Below, one piece after another: positions 1 through 53,232 of a DNA stretch of 64,000 bases (position 1 is its first letter; each line of letters starts with the position of its first letter). The position numbers and the translations under genes are program-made. The stretch spans positions 5,828,001 through 5,892,000 of the forward strand of contig OZ176056.1 in NCBI GenBank assembly GCA_964247055.1. The letters are read 5' to 3'. The notes below the pieces were generated by a model that worked only from the letters and a program-made list of their open reading frames with translations, was not told the DNA's origin and ran no database searches. Source of the stretch: Paragordius varius. Its lineage: Eukaryota > Animalia > Nematomorpha.

Positions 1-1470
1 AACGCTTTAATTACTTACTGGATCTAATGCGGTTTCTTTTCGAATATCATCTCTGCTTAACCGCACGTTATGACAATTCAAAATCTCAGATATCTGGTAA
101 CCACATAATCTTCATCGTAGGCAACGATCTCGTTAATCGGTTATCTCGGTAAATAATCAGCTCTATTTTGAGCCCCCTTTTGATGAATTATTTCAAAGTC
201 GTATTCATTTATCATATTAATCCATCTTATTACTTTAGTATGAATTTTTTTTATATTTTGATCTGTACTAAGGGTAAATGGTCAGTAAATATTATGAATT
301 TTCTACCATATACGATGAAACTTTCTTAAAGCAAAAAATATTGCTTTCGATTCCTTCTCAATAGTGGAATAATTCCTTTCGGCGTTGCAACACTTTTGTG
401 AGGCATATGCGATCGGTATCCTTTCACTATTAACCTCATGACTTAAAATAACTCGAATCCTAAATCTGACGCATCAATTTCTATTATCAATTTCCTATTC
501 GGGTTATATGGTGTTAAAAACACTTTTCGCTTAACAAATTCTTAGCTGCAAACCAGCTTTTCTCATGTTTATCGGTCCAAGATCATCTCGTATTTTTACT
601 AGGTAACTCATTTAAGGGACCGATCATTTATTTTGGTATAAAACGTTCATGAAACGTCAAAAAACCTAAAAAACCACGTAATAACTTTTTATCTACCGGC
701 CTTTTTAGTTTTTTAATTGCCTTGATTTTGCTTTTACATGGGTTTATACCCTTTTCGGTTCAAACCTTAAATAATTTACTGATTCTGCACCTATCATTAT
801 TTTATCTTGTCTTAATTTGAACGGCTTTATCAAGACGACTTAATACGTTATTTAAATTGTTAAAGTGCTCATTTTCCGTCCTACCAGTCACTAGGAGGTC
901 ATTAAAATACGCAAACTCCCGGTCTTTCAGCCAGCACCTGTTCCATCACCCGTTGAAAGATGATGGGTGCCGTGGCCAGTCCAAACGGCATGCGTTTGTA
1001 TCTAAAATAAGTTTATGTGTTGAGATAGTTAACAAATCTTGCCACTCCTCTGCCACTGGCATTTGGAGGTAAGCATTTTTTAAATCAATATGTGAGACCT
1101 TCGCTTATTTTCGACAACTCGTCAAACGTGGGGTTATATAAGAGTCTTCTTGCAACCACTTATTAATCGTTACCCGAAAATCACTGCATATGTTTAATTC
1201 GCCATTCGGTTTAAGTACATTAACCGTAGGCGTGGCCCATGTCACAGGTGTTATGTTAGGATCAACTGGTTCTAAAAGCCTAACTTTTCTAGCCTCGTCA
1301 GCTCTTTCTCCATCTTTTCTCTCAATGGAAAAGGCATCCGACATGATAATGCTTTCGGGATCGCATTCGCTGCAATGGAATTTTTACAGGGTCTTTATAA
1401 CACCCCTGCTTATTTTCGAATAAGTTTTTATAATTTTCGAAAATCTCATTTAATTTTAAATAATAATTTT
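1..1470 (-). mobile_element. Degenerate Ty3/Gypsy LTR-retrotransposon pol fragment (RT - RNase H - linker), truncated by the window edge
   Basis: The minus strand gives the RT N-terminal motif VTWATPTVNVLKPNGELNICSDFRVTIN (ORF 1105-1344). It also gives a decayed catalytic motif AYFNDLLVTG (~885-915), an RNase H end VIRWINMINEYDFEIIHQ..ADYL (~150-240) and LSRDDIRKETALDP (~20-60). Frameshifts and stops occur throughout. Confidence 0.9.
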
Positions 1471-1989
1471 AATTTAACCCTTTAACTCTCCAACTTTTTA
1501 CATTCATGTTTGTTATTCTATAATTTGTGATTTTAGGCTCTCAATCAAACAAATTTTTCGCATTAATTACAAAATTAAATAATTTAAAAAGCTATTAAAA
1601 AAATATTTTGATTTGTGCCCTGTTTTATCAAGGTAATTACACGATAATTGTTTTACCAAAAATTACCAAATTAAAAAACCACCTATATTTTTATTATTTA
1701 TATTTAAATATAATACGTTAAACAAAAAATGGCAAATCTTAAAAAGATAAACAATTTAACCGATAATTAAAAATAATGTAGTGGAAACGGTATATAATTA
1801 AATATTTATAAAAAAAACTACATGTTTGCCGTTCGTCTGTGTCACCCCACACAAGGACATCACAAATATAAAGGCATAAATATTGCATAAAACGTTAGGG
1901 TTGTCTAGAACCATTCAACATTAAATTATTATCAAAGGACATGATGGCTAAATTTATATAAAACATTAAAATTTCAGTCAAAAAATGCA

Positions 1990-2222
1990 TTAATATTACG
2001 ATCATGTATCCTTTATTTTATCAAAAATTTATTTTTTTCATTGAATGGGTAATATTTGGTATAGAATAGAAAAAACACGAGCTCTATGTTGATTATACTT
2101 TTGATGAATATGATATTGGTACAATAGAGCTCTTGCTTTTTCCATTCTTTACCAAATATTTATCCCCATTTAAACAAAAAAAATAAATTTTTGATAAAAT
2201 TAAGGATACATGACTGTAATTA
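1990..2222. repeat. Foldback (palindromic) MITE-like element
   Basis: Arms 1990-2087 and 2124-2222 are reverse complements of each other, e.g. catgtatcctttattttatcaaaaatttattttttt vs aaaaaaataaatttttgataaaattaaggatacatg, and gagctctat vs atagagctc. The spacer is ~36 nt. Confidence 0.8.
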
Positions 2223-2633
2223 ATATTCCAGTTTATAATGTACTGCTTAGGTTATTTGATAATAATTTTATATATTACATTTAAAGGATAATATGTCAAA
2301 ATACATAGAAAAACTATATTTTAAAATATTCATATTTCATAGGTTATTATATGTCCCTTTAACATACTGTATTGTAAGTTAACCGATTGATTCATTTACA
2401 TATATAATGTATAATAGTTCTAATAATTTGAAAAAATTTGTAGAAAAGGTAGTTGTCATGTAAATACTTGTAACAGACCAAATAATTATATAATCGAATC
2501 GAACTCCATTCATATAACATATATTCAATTTGTCAAAAAAACTTTTAATAATAATTTGAAATAGTTTTCCTCACACAAGTTTTATAAAACCAAATTTTTT
2601 ATTATATTTCGTTGTAAAAAATATTTTATCGCC

Positions 2634-5600
2634 ATGACTAAATTTGGAATATTCGTTTTTTTAGCCTGCTTATGTATGTTATTCGTAGATTGTCAGGGTA
2701 AAAGACATTTTATAAAATGTTTGGGGTTCCCAGGCCCAGCCGTATGCGGCCCTATAAAAATGTTATTCAGCCCACGAGATAATGATAGAAAACTCTATGA
2801 CATTTAAATAAATTCTTTATTAATAAAATTGTCTTAATAAATCTTTCCGCGGCAATAAACTAGAAAAACTCTTAAAATATATAGCCTTTTTTACAGTTTA
2901 ATGTTTGAAATCTAAATAAACATTTATAAAAGCCCATATGTTTCGTGAATGCTGCCCGCCGGGTTTTAGAAAATGCGCCGCGAAGCCACTTATGTTGGAT
3001 ACCCGTGATATAAAGCAAATAAACCGAAAAAATTTTAATAGCCAATTATAAAAATATATTTTTTTATTAATCAATTTTTCAAGAAAATCTAATATTTATT
3101 TTAAGATGAGCCAAATACTTAGACATTATAAATAAATTATTTTGTAGTATTTTAAACATATTAATTAATGTAAAATTTGAGAATGTTTTAAAAAGCTAGT
3201 TTTAATTTTTTGCGATATAAAACATCCGATTAAACAATCGACATTTGATAAAAAGCTTTTTTAATATGTAAACTTGTTCTTTATGCTATATATAATTTTC
3301 TATTTTATTATAAAAATAATTAGAATTAAATCACAGTTTTATTATATGCATATCAGAAAATTTTGTCAAATCTACATTAATATGGCACATTAGGGTAAAA
3401 TGATGATTGCTTTCATTGACAATACTAGCGTAAATCTCGTGCTGCTACGGAGCACGAAAAAGTCCTTCGAACTTCTGGGGGGGTTTGAAGTTTGGATTTG
3501 AATGGGTCTACCGGTTTTCCGGAAAGTTACATGAGGAATCAGTATTTAGCGGGTAGCTCCTTACCCAGCAGCTATCATCAAAGAAACGGACTAAAATTTT
3601 TGCCTTTCAACAGGGAATACGTGGAATCCATAATGAATTTCGGTCTCATACCTAGGGCGAAAAATAGATTTAAAAAATTATTTTTGTGGAGTTTGTTTTT
3701 TGAAAAAATTGGCATTTTAAGGGGGTAGCGGGTAAAAAGAGGGCCTAAATCAAAAATGTGAGTCGACGATGTTCGGCGCGATCAAAAATAAGTAAACAAA
3801 AATCATATTTGAAATTGAATGGTCCAACACGTTCTCCAAAAAATTGATTTAACCCATTTTTCACGGGGTAGGCCCGAACTGGGGACCTAATTCCAAAAAA
3901 GGGCGAAGCTATTGTCGGGACATTTATTAATGATTATATTTTTTCGATATTTGGATTTGATTGGGTTCACCGGTTTTCCGGAAACAGATCACAAAGTTAC
4001 ATGAGGAATCAGTTTTTAGCGGGTAGCTCCTTACCCATCAGCTATCATAAAACGCCTGGCTAAAATTTTTGCCTTTTAACAGGGAATACGTGGAATCCAT
4101 ATTGAATTTTACGGTCTCATACCTAGGGCGAAAAATAGATTTAAAAAATTATTTTTGTGGACTTTGTTTTTTGAAAAAAATGGCATTTTAAGTGGGTAGC
4201 GGGTAAAAAGAGGGCCAAAATCAAAAATGTGAGTCGACGATGTTCGGCGCGATCAAAAATAAGTAAACAAAAATCATATTTGAAATTGAATGGTCCAACA
4301 CGTTCTCCAAAAAATTGATTTAACCCATTTTTCACGGGGTAGGCCCGAACTGGGGACCTAATTCCAAAAAAGGGCGAAGCTATTGTCGGGACATTTATTA
4401 ATGATTATATTTTTTCGATATTTGGATTTGATTGGGTTCACCGGTTTTCCGGAAACAGATCACAAAGTTACATGAGGAATCAGTTTTTAGCGGGTAGCTC
4501 CTTACCCAGCATCATCAAAGAAACGCGTGACTAAAATTTTTGCCTTTTAACAAAGAATACGTGGAATCCATATTGAATTTTACGGTCTCATACCTAGGGC
4601 GAAAAATAGATTTAAAAAATTATTTTTGTGGACTTTATTTTTTAAAAAAGGTGGCATTTTACGGGGGGAGCAGGGAAAAAGAGGGCCTAAGTTAAAAAGC
4701 GAGACGACTATGTTCGGCGCAATCGATTTATAAATAAAAAAAATCATATTTGAAATTGAATGGTCCAACACGTTCTCCGGAAAATTGTCTCAAAGACACG
4801 ATTTGTGTGGACTTCTGTTTTAAAAAAAAACGTTTTTCACACGGGGTGGGCCCGAATTGGGGGCCTATTTCAAAAAAAGGGCGAAGTTAGTGTCGGGGCA
4901 TTCATTAATGATTATATTTTTTCGTAGTTTAGATTTGAATGGGTCTACCGGTTTTCCTGTACCAGATCACAAAGCCAGCATTTTCCATTTTTATAAATAT
5001 AAAGATTATGATTAAAATTTTAGCCATTTGATTTATAAATAAAAATTTTACAAAATTTGTGAGATTTAATTTCTTTATATGACCAGTTATGTGTGGGTGC
5101 CAATCCTGCTTTATTCCAAAATTTTAAAATCTATAAAAAAGGCTCAAATCAAAAAATGCTACGAAAATTATATATATATACACTGTGTGCAATAAATTTT
5201 TTTTTCATGAGATACTATCACCAGCGTATTCATTTGTCGCAAAAATTGTTGACAACCTAGTTTTTGAAATATTGAGAGAAAATCGAAATCGGCAAAAAGT
5301 GAAAATTAAGGATAATTAGGGATAATTCAAAAAATAATTATAAAGTGTTTATTATCATTTTAGGAGATGATTTCAATATATAAATAGCCTAAACTCATAT
5401 AGTTAGGATGTCTAAAAATTTCAGGTCAAAAATGGCGTTTTTCTTTTATCACACTTGAAACTATATTAAAATAATTTTTTTGATTTACTACCGAAACTCA
5501 CTATTAAAATCTTAACATATATATTTTATTCAGGAAATAAAACTAAAAATATTGTTTTTTATTTTTGTATTTTTTGTCATCTGGTTTATGAGTGTATAAA

Positions 5601-7063
5601 AAATTTATACTATTTTATTTTCGATTCTTACATGAGTGGGAAGTATTAAGTATATAATTTATGCAAAATAGGTTTTTAGTGGAATATCAACCAACAATCC
5701 GTACAAATCCCAATACAAATATTAATTTGCCATGAAACAGACTTGTTACAAGAAATTGTAAGGATTGTTGATTGATATCCACTAATTTTCAATCCTATTT
5801 TGCATAAATTATATAATTAATAATTCCCCTTATGTAAGAATCCAAAATAAAATAGTAAAATTTTTTTATACACTCATAAAACAGATGATAAAAAAATGCA
5901 AAAATCAAAAACAATATTTTTGGTTTTATTTTGATATAGAAGTTTATTTTCCTGAATAAAATATGAATGTTAAGATTTTAATAGTGAGTTTAGGTAGTAG
6001 ATAATTAAAAAAAATTATTTTATATAGTTTCATTTTTGTCTTTTAAGTGTGCTAAAAGAAAAACGCCATCTTTTGACCTGGAATTTTATAGAAACCTAAT
6101 GATCTTAAGCTCTTTATATATCGATATTTCCTAAAATTATAATAAACGATAATGTTTCAGATTTTATCATTATTTTTTGAATTATCCTTAATTATCCATA
6201 ATTTTCGCTTTTTGCCCGATTTCGATTTTCTCTCAATATTTCATAGGTTGTCAACAAATAAAAATTTTTGCGGAAAATGAATACGCTGGTCATAAGCTAT
6301 CCTATGAAAAAAAAATTATCGTTAAATCAAAATGACCCTCTTTTTTGCACACAGTGTATGTATATATATATATCATATACACAATATTAGTTCGAAGTGG
6401 TAGTGTGGCTGAATTAAAGGAGCTGGAAAGAAAATTTTATGAATTGCAACGTGAACAAACCAAATATATAAATCTGCATGGTAAATATTATTTTTGTTGA
6501 AAATCCCCGATTTAAAATTATTCACAAATTTAAGACTTCGATTCTAATATTAAAATTTGATTCAAAAGTTGAACAGTATTTAGGTTTCGACAATTATTAT
6601 CATTCATAAGTTTTTCGTATTTAAAATTCTGTGTTATCGATAAATTTATCAGTTTATTCGTGAAAAACTGATTCAATTAGTATAAAAAAGAAAAAAAATT
6701 CAGTTTATGTGAGAAAAATGCACATGCAAATTTTATTCGGGGACGTATTTTTTAATTGCAAGAGATGTTTAAAAGGTTTTTTAGGGTTTCATTTTTTAAT
6801 TATTTTTACATTGGCCTTTTATGAGCTGGGTACAACTTTTTTCGACAAATTTAACAAATGTCAGCCAGAAAAACTATAAAAAAATAGTGATATTTCTTTG
6901 GTACAAGAAATTATTTGTTTTAAATTCCCACACATTTTTTTAAGGTATCAAAGAATTTTGCAAGCAAAAATGTGATGATTATCAGTATAGTCGATGTGGT
7001 GAATGCAAGGAATATTTGGATCAAATTTATGGTACTAATCCACCAACTTTATCCCCACAATAG
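2634..7063 (+). CDS. Small secreted cysteine-containing protein, 90 aa; join(2634..2697,6391..6480,6945..7063)
   Basis: The ATG sits in an ATCGCCATG context. Both introns are GT-AG and phase 1 (G|gtaaaa..attag|TT and G|gtaaat..ttaag|GT). The spliced frame is open to TAG at 7061-7063, with AATAAA just downstream (~7076). Protein: MTKFGIFVFLACLCMLFVDCQVRSGSVAELKELERKFYELQREQTKYINLHGIKEFCKQKCDDYQYSRCGECKEYLDQIYGTNPPTLSPQ. The N-terminus is a typical hydrophobic signal peptide. Confidence 0.75.
2720..3007. mobile_element. Decayed hAT-type MITE remnant
   Basis: The GC-rich ends (ggggttcccaggccc..gcggccc / gccgcgaagccacttatgttggatacccgtg) resemble those at 9311-9567, ~12455-12490 and ~57770-57990. 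No clear TSD. Confidence 0.4.
3425..5005 (-). mobile_element. Non-autonomous Helitron with internal tandem repeats
   Basis: On the minus strand it starts A|TC (5006/5005) and ends CTAG|T (3428-3425/3424). A hairpin TCGTGCT-7nt-AGCACGA (3437-3457) lies 8 nt before the CTAG. These are canonical Helitron termini at an A^T insertion site. The 5' ~500 bp are shared with 44830-45322. Confidence 0.85.
3492..4980. repeat. Tandem array of ~460-510 bp units (3 full + 1 partial) inside the Helitron
   Basis: The unit start tt(g/a)gatttga..gggt..accggttttcc recurs at 3492, 3951, 4422 and 4929. Units are nearly identical apart from small indels. Confidence 0.95.
5181..6356. mobile_element. Large foldback MITE (~1.18 kb), TA target site
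   Basis: Termini are TA|CACTGTGTGCAA ... TTGCACACAGTG|TA. Arms ~5181-5700 and ~5762-6356 are reverse complements over most of their length. A second copy lies at 15384-16637. Confidence 0.9.
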
Positions 7064-7387
7064 ATATATATGTGAAATAAATAATAAATTTATTATTATA
7101 AAAACAAATAAATGTGTTAATTTTTAATTACATCAATATGAAAATGCTGCAATAATGATTTTTTAGTAAAATAACGAAAGAACTAAAATGTGTGAAATGA
7201 TTATACTTTAAAGATATATCTATACATATTTATATAAACTTAAATAAGTAACATGACTTTCGTTGGTTATTTCATGATAAATAGCGGCTTTAACTGATTT
7301 TCTAGGAATCTACAAGAATGAGCTATAACATTCTAAAATTTTTTAAAAATTGTAAAATAAATGGGTATTAATCTCAATTTTAGGAAA

Positions 7388-10300
7388 TTATAAATCAAAT
7401 AAATTGATTGGGACAGATTCAAGCTTTATATCATCAAACTTTTCCAATGACCCATAGATTTGGTTTAAGGTTTTTTGGTTACGGAAATAGGCATAATCTT
7501 CGTAAACTGAAACACACAATGGTGTTTGAGCCAACAACCGAACATAATGATGTAATAAATGAAATCTAGATTGGGTACAATTAAATTTATTAAGATTATA
7601 GGAAAATGTGATTTCAAATTAATTTTATTCTAAATTACCATTTATACACTTTAAGTCCCCTAACTTAGCATATTTCTTTTTAATATTAATTTAAGATTCC
7701 TAATTAATTAAACATTGAAACATTTCTCATATTCGATTAAATCATATATATCATTCTGGGATAAATTTCATATAGGATTAATTTTTTGCTAAATTATATA
7801 ATTTTTTATAAAAATTTATTTTTTTGCTAAGTGCTGTGTTAAAATAATAAATATATTTTTCTCACGACTAAAAAAATATTAAATTTTTTTTATTTAATTT
7901 AATCAAAATATGTTAAATAGGAAAATAGAAATAATAAATATTATATACAGTAAAATTTAAATTATACGGACAAAATGTACATTATAAAGACAATTATTTT
8001 AAAGGACAACTATACTTTCTACTTGAATTTTTAAAATATTACAGATTTTTTTAAAAGTATGGTTGTCTTTTAGAAAAAAAATTTGTCCTTATATTTTTAC
8101 GTTTTATCCGTAGAATTTAAATTTTTAATGTTAGTTTACTTTAATAAAAAGTTATTTAATAGAAATTTTGATATAGAGTAAAATTAATTAAGGAGATTTT
8201 AAGGGTAAAATTGGAAATAAAAAAATAAACTTACCTAAATAGCTGTATTATGAAGGCCCTAACCATATCGATAGAGGTGATATTATTCACATTACTACAA
8301 GATTCATCTATATGACAAAAATGATCGGCATCATTTATAGCTTTATATTTGGTACCATTACGATTGTTGTGAATGACTTCCCCTTTAATAATATGCGCGT
8401 TGGTAATATTATGATTTGGGGCAAAATTGATTGCTGAACCCTTTAAACAAAACGTTTTTTTAATTTTTGAAAATAATGCTAGGATTGAATTTATATTCCG
8501 AATGGTTACATCATCCCAACCTTGACTGTGGAAACAAAGGAGTTTGCGCAAAAAATCATTAACATAACCTATTGTAGAATAGAAATATTGTGACTCTAAA
8601 TATTATTCTAGTCAAAAGTAAAATTACATAAAGAAAGTAAAAGATATATATGTTAGGACAATTATATTTTGCTAAATATTAATTTTTTAACCAATTGTTT
8701 TGGTGTTTTGCTATAAATTGGTCACCTATTATAATTTTAAAATCAAAATAATCAAGGATAAAAAAATGTGTTTCATAAAAAAGTATTATCGTTTTAACAT
8801 TTTATCATTAAAATTCACTTTTTCTTTGAATTAAAAATGTAAAATGGTGTAAAATATAACCCAAGAAAGTCCATAGGTTTTCATCCTTGGAAGAGTCAAA
8901 AAATTTTGAACGAGGATACCTTCGATATGCCATAAAAAAGCGTTCCATATAACTGAGTAAACCATCGTTAGGATTGCAAATTAGTATGATTATTTGAGTG
9001 TTTAGCTAAATATAAAAAATTTTAAAGCTAAAATAAAATTTTGAATTAAATCGTTTGAGAAAGAGCTTAAATTGTTATTATTATTAAATATGTGCTGTTA
9101 AAATAAGAGAAAATAATGTTAAAAAGTGTGTTTAATAAAAACTATTTGGCCCTAAAATAATTTTTTTGACTAAAAATCCTTATACTACAATTAAAAATGT
9201 TTGAATCTTTTAATAAAATAATTTGTTTTTACATTTATCCATACGCAATATTTCGCATTGAAGCAATAATGTATATTGTATGCTCATTTAATAATAACAT
9301 TAGTCTAAAGGAGGGATGCCCAACATAAATGGTTTCGCAGGCCGCATTTGAAATTTATATATGGGCATTAATTTACAATTTATTTTATTTTAAAAATATA
9401 AAATTCATATACATTGCAATTTTTTCTGATTCTCGCCGATTGGTTAGAATTGGGTAAGAAATATTAATTTTAATTAAATTTTATTGGCTTATTTGGAAAT
9501 TATAGATTTCCATAATTTTCGCGGGCCGCACATAAAGTTTCATAGAACCGCCTTTTAGACACTCCTAGTCTAATAAAGTATTAAACTTTGCATCGCAAAT
9601 ACTTTTAAAAAACTAATTTTGTTTAAATAAATTGAGTTGGTTGAACATATTAAGTCAAATCTTATTTTAAGTAACAACAAAATATAATATACGGTTTATA
9701 TCCAATTTATTTTGCAAACATAAATTCTAAAAAGTACATTTTTTCTATTTTTCAAATTATTTAAATGGTAATTTAAAAAAATATATTTCTATATTTTTTG
9801 ATTAAATACCAAATATAATTAGTATGGACAATAAATTATTTACATTTTTAATGTTCACATCATATTCGTTAGGATTATTTCCTTTGAATTTTGCCAGGAA
9901 CCCAATCTTTTCCCGCAAAGAAGTTAAACAAACCTGATATTGTTCCAACAATATCTTTTGTTGATCATATATTTGAGTTAGGGTTAATTCGGTATTTAAG
10001 TTGGTAGAATTGTCAACTTTTTCATTTAACACATCTATATTGCAAATATTTTTGAAAGTTAACGATTGCCACAAAATAGTGCAGCTATAAAATTCTAATA
10101 ATAGATGTAAAAACTTTAATATGTAATAAATAATGTAGGATATTCACAAATATAGCAATATCTTAATTTTAAAATAACATGAATAAAAGTCTTACCATGA
10201 GATTTAATTTTGGAATTTTTGGAGATTGTGTCATATAGAGTACGAATATCTTAATTATAAAATAAAACACATAATTAATTGTACAAAAATAAATAAATAT

Positions 10301-13300
10301 AATATAAAAATTTATACCCTTGGCCAAATCAAAATTATAGGGTAGGATTTCGCTCAGAAAAACACAAAAGTCCAAAGGAGATGCTATATTCTGTGATCCA
10401 TCCTTTCGATTTCCAGGTATTTTCATTTGTCCCGCATTAAATATATTGTCAAATCTGTATTGAGTAGAAGAAAAAAAATTCATATCAAATCTTATGAAAG
10501 AAAAATGAGAAGATTATAATATATCTTAATATTTTCGCACTTAAATATACGACCAGTTAATTCATTGCGGACGTAAATGGCTTTAATATTCATAGGGGTA
10601 TCCGTAGGAGACGATGCCTTATTGGAGTAGGATAAATATATAGCTTGTAGCACACCAAGGTTTGGATGCTATAAGGTAATATTAACAAAATATTTATTTG
10701 TACCATTTAGTTAACCTAATAATTAATCGACGGTACATTACATTTCAGACCATTAAAACAATAGCAGGATGACCTGGTTCACAATTTTAATAGTAAATTG
10801 TAATGGTTTTGTAAAAAAGCATTTTATATGCCTATTTTAATTCTTTGCTTTGTATAAAATATTATACCATTTACACACCTCAAATTCATGAAGCACTTCA
10901 AATTAACCCATGATTTCAAATTCCCCGTTGAACATTCGAAATTCACCCAAAAATATATTAAGTGTTTTTTGATCTAACTAGCTCATCATTTATATGAAGT
11001 ATTTATGGCATTATCATTATTTTCTGGATGTTAATTTTAAACAATTTTTTATATTTAAATAGATGTATTACTGATTTTAAAAACAATTTTTAGGGTAAAT
11101 TCTGAAAATGTGAATTTTAAATAATCAAGGGTGAATTGAAGTGTAAATTGCATACACCGGTTAAATATTAAATAAAGAGTACTTTTCTAATTAACCAACA
11201 ATCAATATCGGCTTTATAACCATTTGCATTACGTTTACTTTAAAAACAGAAAATTAAATGGTTCTTTTATTGATGTAAATCTCTTATGGCAGAACATGAG
11301 CGATGAATTTTCCTGCTTCAAAAAAAATATTAAAATTAAAACAAAATTTTTGAAAGAATGCCAGAACATATCATTTAAAACTGTAATGACTAAGCAGAAA
11401 GCAAAGAAAAAGTCATTTGGTTGCCATATTAAAACCTACATTTAAATCTAATTTAATTAAATACATTTCAGTTAAATACATTATCAATTAATAACTACGT
11501 TTCGGCTGAAACTTAGGTGTAATTGTTAAATTTTATAAGAAACTAGAGACGCATCTGCCTAAAATAAAATTTAGGTTGAAATATCATTAATTTACGAGAA
11601 CCTTAAATTCGAATTCCAACGAATTTTCCGAGGGTAAAAGGATTGGTGTCTTCTTTAGATGACCCATGAGAGTAAAACCAGGCAATTTAAAGACGGTATA
11701 AAATGTGATGGGTTTAATTGGGCAAAACACCATTTTATACGGTATTTCTATCATAATGATATAATTATTATTAATAAAATTTCGTGTAAAATTTAAAACA
11801 TAAAATTCAATTAATATTGAATAATGTATGATTTTATCGAATTATAAATTTTTTAAGAATTCACAATTACTAGTCGAAAAACCCATGCATTTAATATTTC
11901 CAGCTTCTTATCTTTGATTGTAATATTTTTAATTGAAACTTGCATATATATTATATATTCATTCTATTTTAACGAAAAGATTAAACAGTATGCATTTTAA
12001 AGCTGGCTTATTGACATTGGAGTTAGTCAATTGACACACAGAAACAAATCCCAATAATCTTACCTATATTGATGTAAGTGTTTGTAAAGCAAAAGTAATC
12101 CACGGTACCCAAAGTTTGAATGTAATGTAAAAATTGTTCACATTCGTCAGCACATCGGATAAAAGCATAGCGTTTATAATATTTTCTATGCCGAACAAAA
12201 AAATGCATAAATTATTATTGAATCAATATACAGTATGAGTAAGTATATATTGGAAAGTAAAATATTGCCAAATAATAGTATATTAAACAAAGAGAATTAT
12301 TGACAAATAATAATAAAAAGTGAAAAAATAACGCGAAAATTGTCAAAATACATAATGGTTTTTACAATCTTATGTTTAAAATCTAATAAAATATTTGTGA
12401 ATCCCATATATTTTTCGAATGCGATCCGTCGGATTTTTCGTTCCAAAAATGCGGCCTGCGAAGCCGTTTATGTTGAAAACCCATACTAGAGCTAAATTTT
12501 ATTATTTTTTTTATAGTTTTTTTTTCAGAATCACGTGAAACGTTTATAATTAAAACTTTTGTATGAATTATGTAATTTAATAAATAAATTATAGTGCTTA
12601 TAAATTTTAAATTTTTAGTAATAGCATAAGACATTCGTATATAGGTCATGAATAAGGCAGAAAATATTGATATTTATATACAGTTTAGAGTTCCTTTTTC
12701 CTTTTAAAAGGTAGGACTTAAATTATAACCGAACTCGCCTGCTCAGGGCTGACAGCGATGATTGAAAAATTGCGTATTTCTACCTCCAGTAAAAAAAATA
12801 TTAATAACTTTATTAGAAGCTCGAATTGTCGCACAAAAGCATCATCAGGAGTTGTTTAAAAAATAAGTGGAACCAAATAAATAAATTTTAATATGTGACT
12901 AATTAATATTTTCTTTAATTGCTATAACTATAATGGATAAAGAAAAATATCACAAAGGAAATCATTACAATCTAGTAGGTGCGTGTGGAACAAATTTTAT
13001 ATAACACATATATGTATATATATTAAGGTATCTAAATAATAAAAAATATAAATATTTAATATCAATACTTTATAAAGGATTGAGAATAAAAACTGTGGGT
13101 GCATGTGCCGCCTTCTCTTCGCGACTATTAGTAGATTCTAAGGACTGTATGAATAAGGATTCTTTGGTGAGTCTGGATTTGAGCTTCTTTGATTGCTAAG
13201 ATATCTACCGAAATAGAAGGTGGTCATTGTCCAAACAATGTAAGAATATGGCTGAATGCTTCTTACATGCTCTTTAAACTTCACCTTTAAGTCTCTTTTC

Positions 13301-21757: not shown

Positions 21758-24700
21758 ATAATTTTTGACGATTTAATCGGTCGTACCAAAAATGATTTCA
21801 TTGGTAATTCGATTGGTGTAAATGCATGTTGCCTAATCAGTGTCAAACAAATAGAGGTAACCATACTTAGTTCAAATATATAATCCCATATTTATTGCTA
21901 AGTTGCATAGCAAATGGGAAATAGGCTTTCAATTCGGGAGGATCCGGGGAAGGATTGGTATCATCATTATTAATATTTTTATCATTAGGACCATGAGAGG
22001 GGTGGTTATGATATTATCATTAGTATCGTTCTGTTGTTCCGATCACAACACTTCTGGTCAGATAGCTTAAATTCATCTGGACCTTCTTTTCGCGCTCTTA
22101 ATTAATCAGTATGTTTTCGTAAAAACTTACCTCTATCTTCGATATTGTATGACAATAATCCAGTCCGCTTTACTACTTTTCCTTCTCGCCATCCGGCTTC
22201 TGACACATTCTTTATAAATACTTTCTCACCTGAAACGAACTCAAGCATACAATCTGAGGTACGATCAATATAATCCGTTGGTTTTCCTTTCATCCAGGAC
22301 AGCAGTGTCGGTAAATTTCGCTTTTGAAATAGTCGTGCAGGTGTCTCATTTATACCAGTGTGATGTGATCTGAGCCTAGAATACCTGGTTTAACCGGCGT
22401 TCTGGATCTGCTACTTCAGAATTACACATATAATAGTGCGTTTTCAAGGTTTGAATAACCCTTTCGACCAAACCATTTCGAATGTGGTACGGCAGTTACA
22501 TGCTTCATATTAGAGGAACTTAATATTCTTTCAATATTATCGGACTTAAAATACAACGCATTATCAGTTGCAATCATCTCTGGGGTTCCATATCGTTCAA
22601 ACCAACTTTCATAATAGTGAGAGTGTTTACTGTTTTAAGCTGTGCCACTTCCACCCATCGGGTACAGTGATTTATAATGACCCAAAGTAGAGGTTATATA
22701 TACTGCCCCGCTATATCGAGATGCAACCATTCCCAAATGGTGGTGTTCGGGTTCCATTTATAAGTCGGGATTATTGCAATGTTGAACCGTGACTTTTGAC
22801 AACTTGAACATCTTACCCATTTTTCGATATCCTGGTTCAATTTGGACCAAAACACACTAGTCTTATCTATTGCTTTCATGGAGTGGATACGGGTGACCTT
22901 TATGAAGATAAGTAAGATCGACCCTCATGCTTTAAGGAACAATAAGACGGTCACCTAAATATAGAGGGCCGTCTTATTGTTCGATATTATATTTCATTGG
23001 TTTTGATTAGAGGTTAATGGTCTGTTATGATATCGATTTTCTACCATATAAAAATGTTTTAAATTTCTCTAGGGACAATAAAATGGCTTTTGCCTCTTTT
23101 TCTATAACCGAAGAATTTTTTTCAGCTGGGGAACATTTTTTTGAAAAATATGCAATAAGTCGTTTACTTTCCGACGTCTTGTGCGACAGGATGGCTCACG
23201 AACCCCTCACCAGATGCACCTGTTTCTAATATAAGGTAGAGCCTTGGGTTAAAAGAAAAAGAGACGGGTGTTATTTCCTATTAAGAACTTAGCCCTTTCA
23301 AAAATATTTTGATTTACGTAGGTCCAACACCATTTGTTTTGGGAACGAGCTAGCTGAGGAAGTACGTTGTCAATATGAAGTATAACGTGAATGAAAGTTT
23401 AAAAAGCCCAAAAACAATCGGAGACTTGTTTTATCTTTAGGGGCTGAACACTTCGAACGGCCTTATTATAAATGCTCGCAGGTTTTATACTTTTTTTCTG
23501 ATATAGTAAGCCCCAAATATTCAACTTCCTGTTGAAAAAGAATTTACCCATTCGTTTTATTCCTTCAAATTGTGTTAGGTTTCTATAATAGTCCTCATTA
23601 TTTCCGTAACAATTCGCTGTTCCCTTACAATCCCCTAATAACTTATCCATGATCTGTTGGAATATACTAGGCGCACACGACAGAAGGGAGCCTAGTCTGT
23701 TTAATTAAGATTCCGGGTGCACTGTAATTTGAAGATTAACATCTTTTAAATTTAATGATGAAAACGTCTTATGTAAAATTTTAAAAAATCATCAAATGTG
23801 GGTATAATATATTGAATTGTTAATATAAATTTTATTGACACTTTAAAATCTCCGCACATTCTTAACTCATTATTCGACTTTAAAATGTTTACTACTAAAC
23901 CAACAAATTTTAGACTGCTAAGGGTCTACTGGTTCAATAATTTTTAAGGATAGTATCCTTTTCTCTTCACCTAATTTTTTTTATAGGCTAAGAGAACCTT
24001 TCTAGCCGGAAATTCCCGGCCCCTACTATTGTTTTCTAAAAATATCTTTATCGGTTCCCCTTTCCAACAACCTAATTTGTATTCAAATAACTTAAATTCT
24101 TTTGTATATATCGGTTGTGTGATATAATTTATTAATAAATAATTCATTAGGCAATGGGATATTGAATAGCTGGATCCCATCCATGCCAAATATTAGAGGA
24201 TGATGTCTTTTTGTAATTAAGCACTTTGTTATCTTTGTTACTTTATAATTCAAGAGTTAGTTGTTTATTCTATTACATGCAAAGGATTATTATCATATGT
24301 GTTGTCTTAAAATTAATGGGTTTTATTTTAGGCTTCTCTATGCTAAAATTTATTAACGATATGTCGGCCATTGGGTGTTCGACGTGGGTTGAGTTTATTT
24401 TTACATTTATTTAATTTTACTATATTATTCACAGGCATATTTGTTATGGCATTGGATGCCACAATGATTTCTGCCGTGACTCTTGAAGCATTCCTTCCCA
24501 AAAGCTGGGCAGCATCCGTATTTGTGGATGCGACCACTTTTGAAACACGGTTTTACAATAGATTTGCGTTTAACCAGATATTTCATTATTCATTTTAATA
24601 ATACCATCATTATAGCTCTCATTATTATTACCATCATTATAGCTTTCATTATTATGACCATTATTATTACTTTCTATACTATCATTATTTTATATCGCTC

Positions 24701-27700
24701 TCACTGAGTTCGCTTAGGCGAGAATTTGCTTATGCTAAAGCCAAATTTAGAACCTTATTTAACCCTAATGGTGTATCATTGTCTAATGTCTTCGGGTAAC
24801 TGCCAAGTAATTTTTCATCTAGTTGTTTTTCCATCAAACCACATATGAATATTTCCCGTATTAGCTCGTCGATGTAACCTTTGAATTGGCATGCGGCAGC
24901 TAAATTCTTGAGTTCTATTTGGCTTTAGCACAAAAAATTTCGACTGGAAGCGAACTCAGTGAGAGCGATATATAATAAAGATAATATAGAAAGTAATAAA
25001 ATGGTAATAATAATCAAAGCTATAATGATGGTAATATTAATATGACAGATAATAATGAAACATCTGGTAAATCGCAAATCTAGCGTAAAACCGTGTTTCA
25101 AAAGCGGTTGCATCTACGGATGCTGCCCAGGTTTTGGCAAGGAATGCTCCAAATGTCACGGCAAAAATCATTTTGGCAGCCAATGCCAGAATAAATAGCC
25201 AGCAATAACTGCTATTTGAATAATGAAGTAAAAAAACCTAAAATAAATGTAAAAACAAACTCGACCCATGTCGAAATGTTATTCGACACGAAGGCCGACA
25301 TATCGTTAATAAGTTTTAGCACATTTAAGATAGGAAAACCTAAAATAAAACCCATTACTTTTAAGACAAACATATATGATAATAATCCTTTACACGTAAT
25401 AGAAGAGACACTTGAATTATAAAGTAACAAAGATAACAAAGTGCTTTATTACAAAAAGACATCTTCCTCTAATATTTATGGATGGAATCCAGCTATTCAA
25501 TATCCATTGCCTAATAAATTATATATTAATTAATTATATCACACAACCGATATTTACAAAAAATTTAAGTCAATATTTGAATACAAATTGGGTTGTTGGA
25601 AAGGGGAACCGATAAAGATATTTTTAGAAAACAATAATGGGGGCCGGGAATTTCAGGCTAGAAAGGTTCTCTTAGCCTTACAAAAAATTTAAGTGAAAAG
25701 AAATAGATAGTATCCTTAAAAATTATTGAACCTGTAGACCCTAAGCATTCTAAAATTTGTTGGTCCAGTTAGTAAACATATTAAAGTCGAATAATGAGTT
25801 AAGAATGTGCGGAGATTTTAAAATGTCAATATATATATTAACAATTCAATATATAATACCCACATTTGATGATTTGATTTCCAAAATTTCACATGACGTT
25901 TTCAACAATAGATTTAAAAGGTGCTTATCTTCAAATTCCAGTGCACCAATCTCAAAATCTTCTTACAACAAATACAAATCTTGGTTTTTTTAAATATACT
26001 AGGCTCCCTTCTGTCGTGTGCACCTAGTATTTTACAACAGATCATGGATGAGCTATTAGAAGATTTAAGGGAACAGCGGTCTACTTAGATGATGTAATTG
26101 TTACGGGGAACGGACGAGAAGCATTAGAGAAACCTAACACAAGTATTTGAAAGAATAGAACGAATGGGTCTTAAATTCTTTTTCAATAGGAAGTAAAATA
26201 TCTGGGGTTTACTATATCAGAAAAAATATAAAACCTTCGAGCAGTAAGATTAAGACCATGTGCCCAGCCCCTAAAGATAAAACAAGCTTCCGATCGTTTT
26301 TGGGCCTTTTTAACTTTGATTCACGATTTACACCTTCGCTAAATACAATTGTCAACGAACTTCATCAGCTAGAGCTGGTTCCCAAAAGAAATGGTGTTGG
26401 ACAGATGTACATCAAAATATTTTTGAAAGCTAAGTTCTTAATAGGGAATAACACCCGTCTCTTTCCTTTTAACTCAAGACTCTCCTTATCTGAGAAAGGG
26501 TTCGGGGCCATCCTGTCGCACAAGACGTTGGAAGGTAAAGGACCCATTGTATATTTTTCAAAAAAATGTTACCCTGCTGAAAAAAAATATTCGGTTATAG
26601 AAAAAAGGCAAAAGCCATTGTATTGGCCCTAGAGAAATTCAAATGTATGGTAGAAAATTCGATATCAGAACAGACCATAAACCTATTATCAAATTATTCG
26701 GGCATCAACGTATATTAAGCGAGCTAAACAATAGTACTTTACTAAAAACATCCATTTTCGACTTCAAAATAATGTACTACCCGGGAACCGAAAAAGCAGG
26801 CTCACTATCAAGACTACCAACTGAGATAACTGAAGGTTGTGACGAGGATATAGCGCAGGAGGGCCGGTTGCTATGGTGTCAGGAGTTAAATTAAAACACG
26901 GACAGGGTGCTTAAGGAAACTATGAGCGATGAAGTGTGTAAACAGATTAAAGCAGCCCGAAAGACCAATGTGGGGTACAGTCCTATAAACTACTAAGAAA
27001 TGATATCGAACAATAAGACAGCCTTTTTATATCTAGGTGATTGTCTTATTGTTTCTTAAAGCATGAGGGTTGATATTCTTACTCATCTTTAAAAAGGTCA
27101 CCCTGGTATCCAGTCCATGAAAGCGTTAGGTAAGACTGGTGTGTATTGGCCCAAATTGAACCAGATAAAATGGGTGCAAAGATGTTCAAATTGTCAAAAA
27201 TCACCGTTCAAAATTGCATTAAGCCCGACTTATAAATGGAAGCCGAATACCACCGTTTGGGAGCGGTTGCATCTCGATAGGGCGGGCTGTATATAACCTC
27301 TACTGGGTCATACTTCTAGATCACTGTACCCGTTGGGTTGAAGAAAACACATCTTAAAGTAAAATCATTCAGTATTTTGAAAATTTTAGAAAGGTTTGCA
27401 CGATATGGAATGCCATAGATGATTGTAACTGATAATGCGTCGTATTTTAAGTCCGGTGATTTTAAAAGAATATTATGCTCTAATATCAAGCATGTAACTT
27501 ATGCGCCATACCACCCTCAGGCAAATGGTTTAGTGGAAAGGGTTAAAACCTTGAAAACGCACTATTATATGTGTAATTCTGAATTAGCAGATCCAGAACG
27601 CCGGTTAAACCAGGTACCGTGGGCTACATGTCTGCGCATCACAATAGTATAAATGCACCTGCATGACTATTTTTAAAAGAAATTTACCGACACCGCTGTC

Positions 27701-30700
27701 CTGGATGAAAGGAAAACCAAAGGATTATATTGATGGTACCTCAGATAGTATACGTTTCGTTCCAATTGAGAAAAGTATTTTTAAAGAATGAGTCAGAAGC
27801 CGGTTGGCGAGAAGAAAAAGTAGTAGAGCGGACTGTATTACTGTCATACAATATCGAAGATAGAGGTAAGGTGTTACTAAAACACACTGATTAATTAAGA
27901 GGGTGAAAAGAAAGTCCAAATGAACTTAATACAAGAAAGAATTGGAATCGGAACAACAGAATAATATAATGAGAATATCATAGCTAACCCCTATCATAGT
28001 CCTCTTATTGATAACAATATCAATAATTGAGATGCCAATCCCTCCCCGGACATTTATCAAAAATTCCACAATAATCAACAAACTCCTTACGGCGATAAGA
28101 TTGCGGAACTTCCAAGCCTGGAAGTACCAATCGAGAGACGCTATCCCACAGAAGCCAAAAAGCCCGTGACAGATACACGAATCACTTTTAAATTTAGATA
28201 GGTGATAAGTTATGTATCATAACTTAATAGTTTTTGTTAACTTAACTCAATTTAGTTAACTTATTTGACCTTATATATGCTTTAGTTAATTTAGAATAAA
28301 ATATAAAGTTATCCTTCACTCTTACCTTAATGCATACATTTTTGTCCTTGTTACGTTAAATATGTATATTACCTTGGTAGTATATGCTTTCACCAAATTA
28401 CTGTAATATTTAACCTTATGCAAAAATGCAACCTTGCTTTAAAACTAAATAATGGATTATATTTACACTATATATTTTTTATACTACAATGAATTTTGCT
28501 ATTCAGATTATCAAAGCGAAAAAATATTAATACATTCGAATATGTTTTTATAAATATGGTTTAAAAATAAATTGGCCTCGTTCAAGTTCCATAAATTTAA
28601 AATGACTAAATATGGCATTTTTTACATTAAAATAAAAAATCAAATTATAACAATTAAGAAGTGCTTTCCACATCGCATTTCGGCCACGTTCGACTGTAAA
28701 CTGTTCAAAAACAGACGGTTTGAAAGTAAATATTAAAACGGTGTGGTTGTTTAAATAAGTTAATAATGCTTATTCATGTGAATATTTTATTATATGGATT
28801 AAAAATTTTAGTTGCTGTTGTTGTTTAACAATGAGTTTTTATGGTACATCGTAAACTATCCAGCTATACCAACAACTAAAAGTTTAGAAAAAACTTAGTG
28901 GTGAATTGCCTGTTTTAATAACCAAGGAAAGGTTTTAAGCTTTATTTTAATAAAATATTTTAAATATATATAAATATATATAATACTAAAAACTACGAAT
29001 TCATAGATAAAATTTGTTGAGAAACGTGGTAAATAATTGCGTTTCAAACAAAGCCGAATAAAATGGTTGATCTTCAACGGATTGTTCCAACAAAAAAGCT
29101 TCCTTATCAAAGAGCATATCTGAAGCAGGTACAGGAATTGGCCTAATAACAATACTAGAATTCGCTTGTTTTTCCAATCCAAGTATGTTATCATTATTTT
29201 CCTTATCTAATTTAAGATATAAAAAAATATTTAACAATTATTATTTTTAAACATAAAATCATAAAATAATAAGATTTCTCGAAATTGACTATGGGAATTC
29301 TATGATACTATCGATTAAAATTATTTGTAAACCTTAAAATAGGTATATTGACACGCTAATGATTAAATTCAATATGCACATAATCATTAACTTTTTTAAT
29401 CAATATTACCATCTAAAAAATAAGAAATCAAAATATTTGTAATAAACTGCTTTTAACCAAAAATATACACTTAAAAAGTAGAAATAAACTATCATAATTA
29501 AATATACTTACATGCATTCAATTGAGAAAATGAAAAATCTATGTTAGATGATAATTCATTCGATAAAAGGCCCTCAGAGTAAGATTGAAGCTGCACGGGT
29601 TTAACTACACTTGATTTAACTGGATGGCCCAATAAAAAATTTGGTAAATTGCGAAAACATTGAGCAAAATGGTATGCAAATATGGATCTTATCATAAAAT
29701 TTACTGCGGTTTGAATAGCCAACATAGATGGTAAATCTATAAAATTAGTGTAATAATTTTTTAACAAAACCAAAATAAAGAATATAATTTGCATTTTCAA
29801 TATACTACTCATGTTCACCTTAAACATATCGAATTCGCCTTTAATTTCAAATCTTAAACAATTCAAATGTACCCAAAAATAATTAGTGCGTTTCTAAAAA
29901 TGATCTATATTACTTAATATATTAAAAAAATATAATTTTGTTTAAGATCAACATAATAGAAAAAATAACAAAATATGGCACAAAACATATTTCATATAAA
30001 TAAAAAATTAAATTAGCCTGAAAATTCAAAATTTTGTTCGAGGGTTTATAAATTATTATAAACTCACATTTATTGAGGGTTAAATTGGGGCGTAAATGGT
30101 ATTTATAACATCGCTTTATATTAAAATATTTTTTCCAATTATAATTAATCTGATTAAAGTTTTGAATTAAAGTAAACCTCAAGTTATATAAATTTACTTT
30201 TATTGTCAGGAGCGGGTTTGGGCAAATTCGTTAAAATTTGCAACACATTTTTGGCTAATGCATTGTGATTAGGCAAATGTAATTCAAACCTACAAGAATT
30301 GTCAAGGGTTGACCAATTTGTCGTTTGACATGAAGAATATTTTTGATAGCTACCAATATTCTTTTGTAAAGAAAAATTGGGTTGTTTCCAACTCTCATTC
30401 GTGCTAGAGTTATTGTCAATCCTTATATCATTTCCTGCAGGTTCCATAACAAAACTGTTTGGGAAAAATATTTGACCCGTATCGAGATTGGCATAGAAAA
30501 ATGGATGGTACTATATTTTTTTAAAAAATAAGATTAGTTAATATTGAATCTAAGATTTTTTGTCCTTTAGGCTATGCCTATATTTATGGTTAGGTTTGAA
30601 CGGAAAATTTATTTTATCTATTATTCTTAATTTTAATTATGATTTAAGGTGTGCCAAATTTTATATAATTCTTAAATCTTTAAATATTTGAAGTGTAAAA

Positions 30701-46930: not shown

Positions 46931-53232
<6,302 letters not shown>

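Follow-up and report, generated by a model that had tools for sequence, protein, structure and literature searches.

The window, that is, the whole stretch of 64,000 nucleotides (nt) analyzed here, belongs to contig OZ176056.1 of Paragordius varius (designated C7; window at C7:5828001-5892000) and consists of AT-rich animal DNA with a guanine plus cytosine (GC) content of about 27%, taken from an assembly of 110.6 Mb in 44 contigs. On the forward strand of the window, between positions 2634 and 7063, three short open segments join in one frame, and their sequence features suggest that they are quite probably the exons of a real protein-coding gene. The putative product has 90 amino acids (aa) and appears to be the precursor of a small secreted protein with four cysteines in its mature part. 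The elements of the locus, all on the forward strand, were as follows (positions are those of the window).

2583-2589, forward strand: TATAAAA motif, 45-51 nt 5′ of the ATG; a possible core promoter element, weak in an AT-rich genome.
2634-2697, forward strand: exon 1, 64 nt, with the ATG and the putative signal peptide (MTKFGIFVFLACLCMLFVDCQ), ending in phase 1 at the border CAGG/gtaaaaga.
2698-6390, forward strand: intron 1, 3693 nt in the window copy, 901 and 936 nt in the two paralogues.
6391-6480, forward strand: exon 2, 90 nt, phase 1 to phase 1, with borders attag/TTCG and GCATG/gtaaatat, encoding the linker and a long predicted amphipathic helix.
6481-6944, forward strand: intron 2, 464 nt, in the paralogues 471 and 455 nt.
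6945-7063, forward strand: exon 3, 119 nt, entered at tttaag/GTATC, encoding the cysteine module and a proline-rich tail, with the stop codon TAG at 7061-7063.
7076-7081 and 7083-7088, forward strand: two AATAAA polyadenylation-signal motifs, 13 and 20 nt past the stop, kept in all three copies of the locus.

The ATG at 2634 stands in the context atcgccATGa, as read from the sequence. Both introns were in phase 1 with GT/AG borders, and the exons joined in frame, with the exon-by-exon translation MTKFGIFVFLACLCMLFVDCQ / (V)RSGSVAELKELERKFYELQREQTKYINLH / (G)IKEFCKQKCDDYQYSRCGECKEYLDQIYGTNPPTLSPQ, followed by the stop codon (90 aa in total). Each junction codon was completed by a G identical to the final base of the preceding intron, and thus the contiguous segments window:6390-6479 and window:6944-7060 translate to spliced residues 22-51 and 52-90. 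All searches, folds and scores were run on single exons. The exon sizes of 64, 90 and 119 nt are ordinary and not those of micro-exons, and the donors GTAAAA and GTAAAT were similar to GTAAAT and GTAATT found in kinase genes elsewhere in the genome, although this comparison is anecdotal. A preliminary description of the locus had proposed three exons that splice in phase into one 90-aa frame, with a C-x3-C-x7-C-x2-C arrangement, a proline-rich tail and an AATAAA past the stop, and all of this was borne out: the exons have exact coordinates, GT/AG borders and phase 1 introns and are intact in the paralogues, the cysteines and the tail are read from the translation as claimed, and the nearest AATAAA begins 13 nt after the stop. 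The same description had called the exons hidden from the list of open reading frames (ORFs), which is correct only in the sense that they fell below its length threshold, since exon 1 lies inside a 57-aa ORF that starts with ATG and exon 2 inside a 51-aa ORF that starts with TTG. A reading of exon 1 without splicing, as the 57-aa ORF, was considered as a candidate and rejected, as indels just past the donor shift its frame in both paralogues; such frameshifts are to be expected if the sequence behind the donor is an intron.

Each exon had exactly three matches in the genome, all on contig C7, near 5.60, 5.83 (the window) and 6.03 Mb, with equal exon spacing. Genome searches for a wider family, with the peptide of exon 1 and with the DNA of exon 1 plus promoter as queries, gave the same three loci only, so that the paralogue search suggested in the preliminary description ended with exactly three loci. 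The copies belong to a collinear triplication of about 92-95% identity and at least 56 kb, which runs from a point ~9 kb before the window to position 47,000 within it or further (C7:5.819-5.875 Mb); the other two copies lie at C7:5.587-5.643 Mb and C7:6.018-6.072 Mb, and the copies are 195-234 kb apart. The upstream edge of the triplication falls in a region of inverted self-matches. The ATG, the GT and AG borders of the two introns, the reading frame, the stop codon and the AATAAA motif were all kept in the three copies, with the stop placed one codon earlier in one of them (Q90stop), and the AG acceptor of intron 1 was present in each copy despite neighbouring substitutions. The 60 nt 5′ of the ATG were identical in one paralogue and differed by one base in the other, and the 150 nt upstream were 4% variable among the copies, as against a background of about 10%.

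Comparative analysis of the three copies revealed 7 variable positions in 273 nt of exon sequence (2.6%), and indels were absent. Outside the exons, the aligned DNA had substitutions at 6% of positions and indels at 3-4%, and intron 2 was 15% variable. Among random triplets of segments with the lengths of the exons, seven or fewer variable sites occurred in 0.8% of draws (P = 0.008). For GC-matched segments drawn from a 30 kb alignment, the mean of the null distribution was 24 variable sites, the probability of seven or fewer was 0.03, and that of seven or fewer without any indel was 0.017; only 8% of such triplets were free of indels. The amino acid changes were F9L, located in the putative signal peptide, S26I, K46E, S88P and Q90stop, and the synonymous changes were found at I79 and T86, whereas residues 52-87, including all four cysteines, were unchanged in the three copies. 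These data bear on the alternative that no gene is present and that open segments combined by chance in AT-rich DNA look conserved through recent duplication. We consider this alternative unlikely: canonical splice sites in phase in three copies and the lack of any indel in 273 nt speak against it, and the remaining evidence on either side of it is weighed below.

Codon usage was scored with a model trained on 12.2 kb of kinase exons from this genome that are free of stops and supported by homology. The log-likelihoods of exons 1, 2 and 3 in the proposed frame were -2.2, +6.3 and +6.2 bits (sum +10.2). Random stop-free segments of the window with the same lengths scored -8.8 +/- 7.4 bits, and 0.7% of them reached the observed sum (P = 0.007); real coding pieces scored 14.4 +/- 6.4 bits, which places the sum of the gene at their 26th percentile. 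All competing antisense and sense frames over exons 2 and 3 were negative, from -4.8 to -9.8 bits: the antisense ORF of exon 2 had -8.7 bits, and exon 3 had -9.8 bits in the other frame and -4.8 bits on the other strand. The open frame ahead of exon 2 had -6.3 bits in its intronic part. The GC content of the exons was 0.31-0.34 versus 0.21-0.25 in the introns and flanks.

The product begins with a stretch resembling a signal peptide (MTKFGIFVFLACLCMLFVDC), followed by a linker (QVRSGS), a predicted amphipathic helix (VAELKELERKFYELQREQTKYINL), the cysteine module C57-x3-C61-x7-C69-x2-C72, which contains the four cysteines of the mature part, and the tail GTNPPTLSPQ. The signal peptide was assigned by rule (a basic residue among the first five, followed by 14 uncharged residues with a mean hydropathy of at least 2.3): K3 of the MTK start forms the n-region, F4-V18 an uncharged core of 15 residues, and D19-C20 the c-region. 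The mean Kyte-Doolittle hydropathy of residues 4-18 was 2.9, and V at -3 and C at -1 agree with the -3/-1 rule for cleavage after VDC, before Q21. Such starts were rare, as only 2 of the 573 ATG-initiated open frames in the window had one, exon 1 being one of them. The other frame (8312-8434, forward strand) also starts with MTK, lies 1.2 kb downstream, has 41 codons and a codon score of about 0, and is probably due to chance.

Exons 2 and 3 were modelled separately with AlphaFold2 (AF2). Exon 2 alone (window:6390-6479) was predicted as one helix covering residues 6-29 of 30, with a predicted local distance difference test (pLDDT) score of 91.7 and a hydrophobic face formed by L30, L33, F37, L40, Y47 and I48. 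Exon 3 alone (window:6944-7060) was predicted as a helix-loop-helix (helices 2-13 and 20-29 of 39 residues, pLDDT 76), in which C57 and C61 are one turn apart on the first helix and C69 and C72 stand at the entry to the second; in this model, the geometry would suit two stapling disulfides, C57-C72 and C61-C69. The mature part contains 11 Lys/Arg and 11 Asp/Glu, hence a net charge of about 0, and six Tyr. No KR, RR or GKR site and no amidation signal was found in the spliced frame, whose sole paired basic residues, R35-K36, lie within the predicted helix. Thus, of the features of neuropeptide and prohormone precursors, an N-terminal signal peptide is predicted (by inspection and by the hydropathy rule), and mono- or dibasic sites flanking a peptide are not seen. 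The charge of about 0 and the lack of flanking dibasic sites speak for a folded mini-protein and against both a classical processed neuropeptide and an antimicrobial peptide of the cationic type.

It should be noted that the same features would read differently if the product were not secreted, the hydrophobic stretch being a membrane anchor or the four cysteines binding metal inside the cell in the manner of a zinc knuckle. This is highly improbable. The Cx3C and CxxC pairs could ligate zinc, and exon 3 gave a match to the zinc-ribbon family PF23546 (Zn_ribbon_TOP3B) on its CGEC region, but this match is below the cut-off (16.8 bits versus 27) and covers a single CxxC and one cysteine pair only, while the 15-residue core is short for a membrane span and is followed by a -3/-1 site typical of a cleaved signal peptide, and entry into the endoplasmic reticulum would lead to disulfides. 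Membership in PF23546 was accordingly rejected, as the score does not reach the gathering threshold and the family requires two CxxC knuckles, of which one is present.

The zinc-ribbon match was the only one, and sub-threshold, when each exon was compared with Pfam at E-values up to 10. No usable match was obtained in the ESM Atlas with exon 3, and a sequence search of the PDB returned no relative. Protein searches by word index used queries of 60 aa (the open frame around exon 3, from paralogue L003) and 54 aa (the open frame around exon 2), lengths chosen to bring proteins of ~90 aa into the length range, and gave zero candidates. A full phmmer scan of exon 3 against 1.84 billion representatives gave a single match (E = 6.7e-4), which was rejected as spurious since it had 24% identity and no cysteine aligned. 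Foldseek with the exon 3 model found none in the PDB, and a wide VIA-align search returned only generic hairpins (Z not above 3.1); such unspecific results of fold searches are to be expected for a hairpin of 39 residues. Thus, the preliminary description is supported in part in its reading of the product: the signal peptide by the 15-residue core after MTK and by the V/C pair at -3/-1, as far as a rule can tell; the helical stretch by the model of exon 2; and the four-cysteine module by that of exon 3. Its statement that the product matches no known family agrees with the protein and fold searches it had called for, which were run per exon and remained blank in Pfam, the PDB, the ESM Atlas, phmmer and Foldseek.

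The power of these searches was assessed with a control, an intact single-exon ULK3-like kinase of 628 aa (L025:424-2307, reverse strand, contig C3). Its best match was a protein of the horsehair worm Gordionus sp. with 40% identity over 89% of the length, and the next matches, far below that of Gordionus, were crustacean and insect ULK3 proteins aligned over the kinase half only. A best match of 40% implies that the proteins of no close relative are present in the searched collections, in which case a fast-evolving module of 38 aa would be unrecognisable. Consequently, the word orphan here means no detectable relative in the databases and not proven absence; the blank is weak, and the description of the product as unrecognised rests on blank searches with pieces of 29-39 aa.

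Intact splice structure in three copies, low variability of the exons, coding-like codons, GC-rich exons and a rare signal-peptide start make a gene a better explanation than chance. The sequence is probably to be understood as a lineage-restricted gene for the 90-aa precursor of a small secreted protein, one of three near-identical paralogues that arose from a large segmental triplication. Several points weigh against this understanding, and some of them would suit a locus with no gene. The copies are young, about 5-8% diverged, and for this reason conservation is a modest and not a decisive test: identity among the copies is already 92-95% in the background, and some non-coding windows of 100 nt match the exons in conservation (98-100% identical). 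Non-synonymous changes are not few relative to synonymous ones (four, plus one stop shift, versus two), so that purifying selection at the protein level is not demonstrated. The codon score of exon 1 is slightly negative, and the gene model was chosen from many possible combinations of exons, which makes the P values look somewhat better than they are. Each structural model covers one exon and was predicted from a single sequence. Finally, neither a homologue nor an orthologue was found in the databases searched. On the other side, a chance combination would have to account for a codon score that 0.7% of random open frames reach, with positive values in the proposed frames only, for indel-free exons such as occur in 8% of GC-matched triplets, and for a rare signal-peptide-like start, GC-rich exon islands and confident helix predictions.

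There is also a slim chance that the locus is transcribed and that its product differs from the 90-aa model, through further or alternative exons, a larger gene, another end, or a non-coding transcript. The 600 nt past the stop were less variable (4-5%) than average, which suggests that the transcript may extend further. Against a different product, the in-frame stop and the AATAAA 13 nt behind it were kept in all copies, and the ATG of exon 1 was the first in its own open frame, the nearest stop upstream being at 2562-2564. No Pfam domain was found in ORFs of at least 70 aa within 16 kb, and the Rfam scan of window positions 1-12000 revealed no RNA family. A scan for bacterial promoters and terminators showed no enrichment, the models being bacterial and irrelevant to animal DNA.

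According to the proposed gene model, we infer that the locus is transcribed and that the two phase 1 introns are spliced out. The N-terminal signal peptide of 20 residues would direct the product to the endoplasmic reticulum and be cut off after V-D-C20, with an alternative, weaker cleavage possible after S24-G25-S26. The mature product of ~70 aa would then fold into a compact helical domain, in which the amphipathic helix of exon 2 may pack on the helix-loop-helix of exon 3 to give a bundle of three helices, and two disulfides may staple the hairpin by linking the Cx3C on one helix to the CxxC with which the following helix begins; the proline-rich C-terminal tail would remain flexible. The protein would work extracellularly as a folded binding or ligand mini-protein and not as a processed neuropeptide or cationic antimicrobial peptide.

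If expressed, the gene would mean that a scarcely studied animal lineage has a further family of small secreted proteins, one not covered by annotation. To our knowledge, horsehair worms are parasites that manipulate their insect hosts through unknown molecules. Annotation pipelines overlook short multi-exon genes for secreted proteins such as this one, whose products are candidates for signalling or for interaction with the host. Meanwhile, small orphan secreted cysteine proteins are commonplace finds in animal genomes, and the value of this gene hinges on expression data (for example, from secretory tissue of the parasitic stage) and on its presence in other hairworms. A far-reaching version, namely, that the product is a hairworm-lineage-specific secreted mini-protein with an undescribed Cx3C/CxxC three-helix disulfide framework, serving as an effector from parasite to host or as a worm hormone, and that the triplication reflects selection for dosage, is speculative and improbable as a whole.

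Other features were recorded in intron 1 and in the rest of the window, including the triplicated segment.

3405-6361: copy-specific repeat insertions in intron 1, absent from L004 and L005, which account for the longer intron (3.7 versus 0.9 kb).
~3485-5015: dispersed and tandem repeat of ~1.5 kb, in the window copy of intron 1 only.
~5195-6317: foldback (palindromic) element of 1.1 kb with a 77% match to its own reverse complement, in the window copy of intron 1 only.
21944-22990 and 27003-28050: inverted repeats of ~1 kb, 82-85% identity, flanking the following ORF.
26258-26632, forward strand: ORF with the reverse-transcriptase-associated RNase H domains PF17919 and PF17917, in the triplicated segment.
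48458-48796, reverse strand: exon of an ionotropic glutamate receptor (Lig_chan, Lig_chan-Glu_bd, E = 1.5e-17).

The ~1.5-kb repeat had copies of ~90% identity on many contigs, often in tandem arrays (e.g., C2:10.408-10.415, C6:0.670-0.677, C4:9.924-9.930 and C7:9.184-9.191 Mb), with more than 3000 first-look candidates genome-wide. The ORF at 26258-26632, together with its inverted repeats, is a degraded retroelement. Outside contig C7, the mitochondrial contig (L009, C44:5980-10320) contained palindromes with zero spacer (arms of 131 and 97 nt) as well as a tandem array of 72-nt units, each with a palindrome of 49-52 nt, just upstream of COX1 (7480-8820, with 6 in-frame TGA codons). According to a preprint, the hairworm genomes examined until now measure 200-300 Mb, as against 110 Mb for the present assembly. 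Very large perfect or near-perfect mitochondrial palindromes are a published trait of Nematomorpha (PMC6649704), and the palindromes of this contig are consistent with a hairworm-type mitogenome as described there.

The putative precursor was compared with known kinds of secreted peptides. Like insulin/relaxin-like peptides, CHH/ITP, eclosion hormone and bursicon, it is short, begins with a predicted signal peptide and has conserved cysteines. Unlike them, it has four cysteines in the arrangement C-x3-C-x7-C-x2-C, versus at least six there, and lacks a Pfam domain, flanking dibasic sites and an amidation signal; the exclusion of insulin, CHH/ITP, eclosion hormone and bursicon in the preliminary description therefore stands, as the number and spacing of the cysteines do not fit. 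A likeness in design is seen with the cysteine-stabilized (CS) alpha/alpha peptides, a group that comprises scorpion kappa-hefutoxins, framework-XIV conotoxins and plant alpha-hairpinins and has the motif Cx3C...Cx3C and two disulfides between the helices (C1-C4 and C2-C3). The product of the P. varius gene differs from them in that its second cysteine pair is CxxC and the loop has only 7 residues, so that the defining Cx3C-(n)-Cx3C motif is absent, and in that the 90-aa protein, with an extra long N-terminal helix and a proline-rich tail, is about twice their size. The organism is also unrelated, and there is no match in sequence or fold. It shares with them a small size and predicted secretion, and may also share a hairpin of two short helices, as predicted for exon 3, with two cysteine pairs that could form a double staple. 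Thus, the resemblance to the CS-alpha/alpha peptides, drawn by analogy from the predicted hairpin, is one of design and not of membership.

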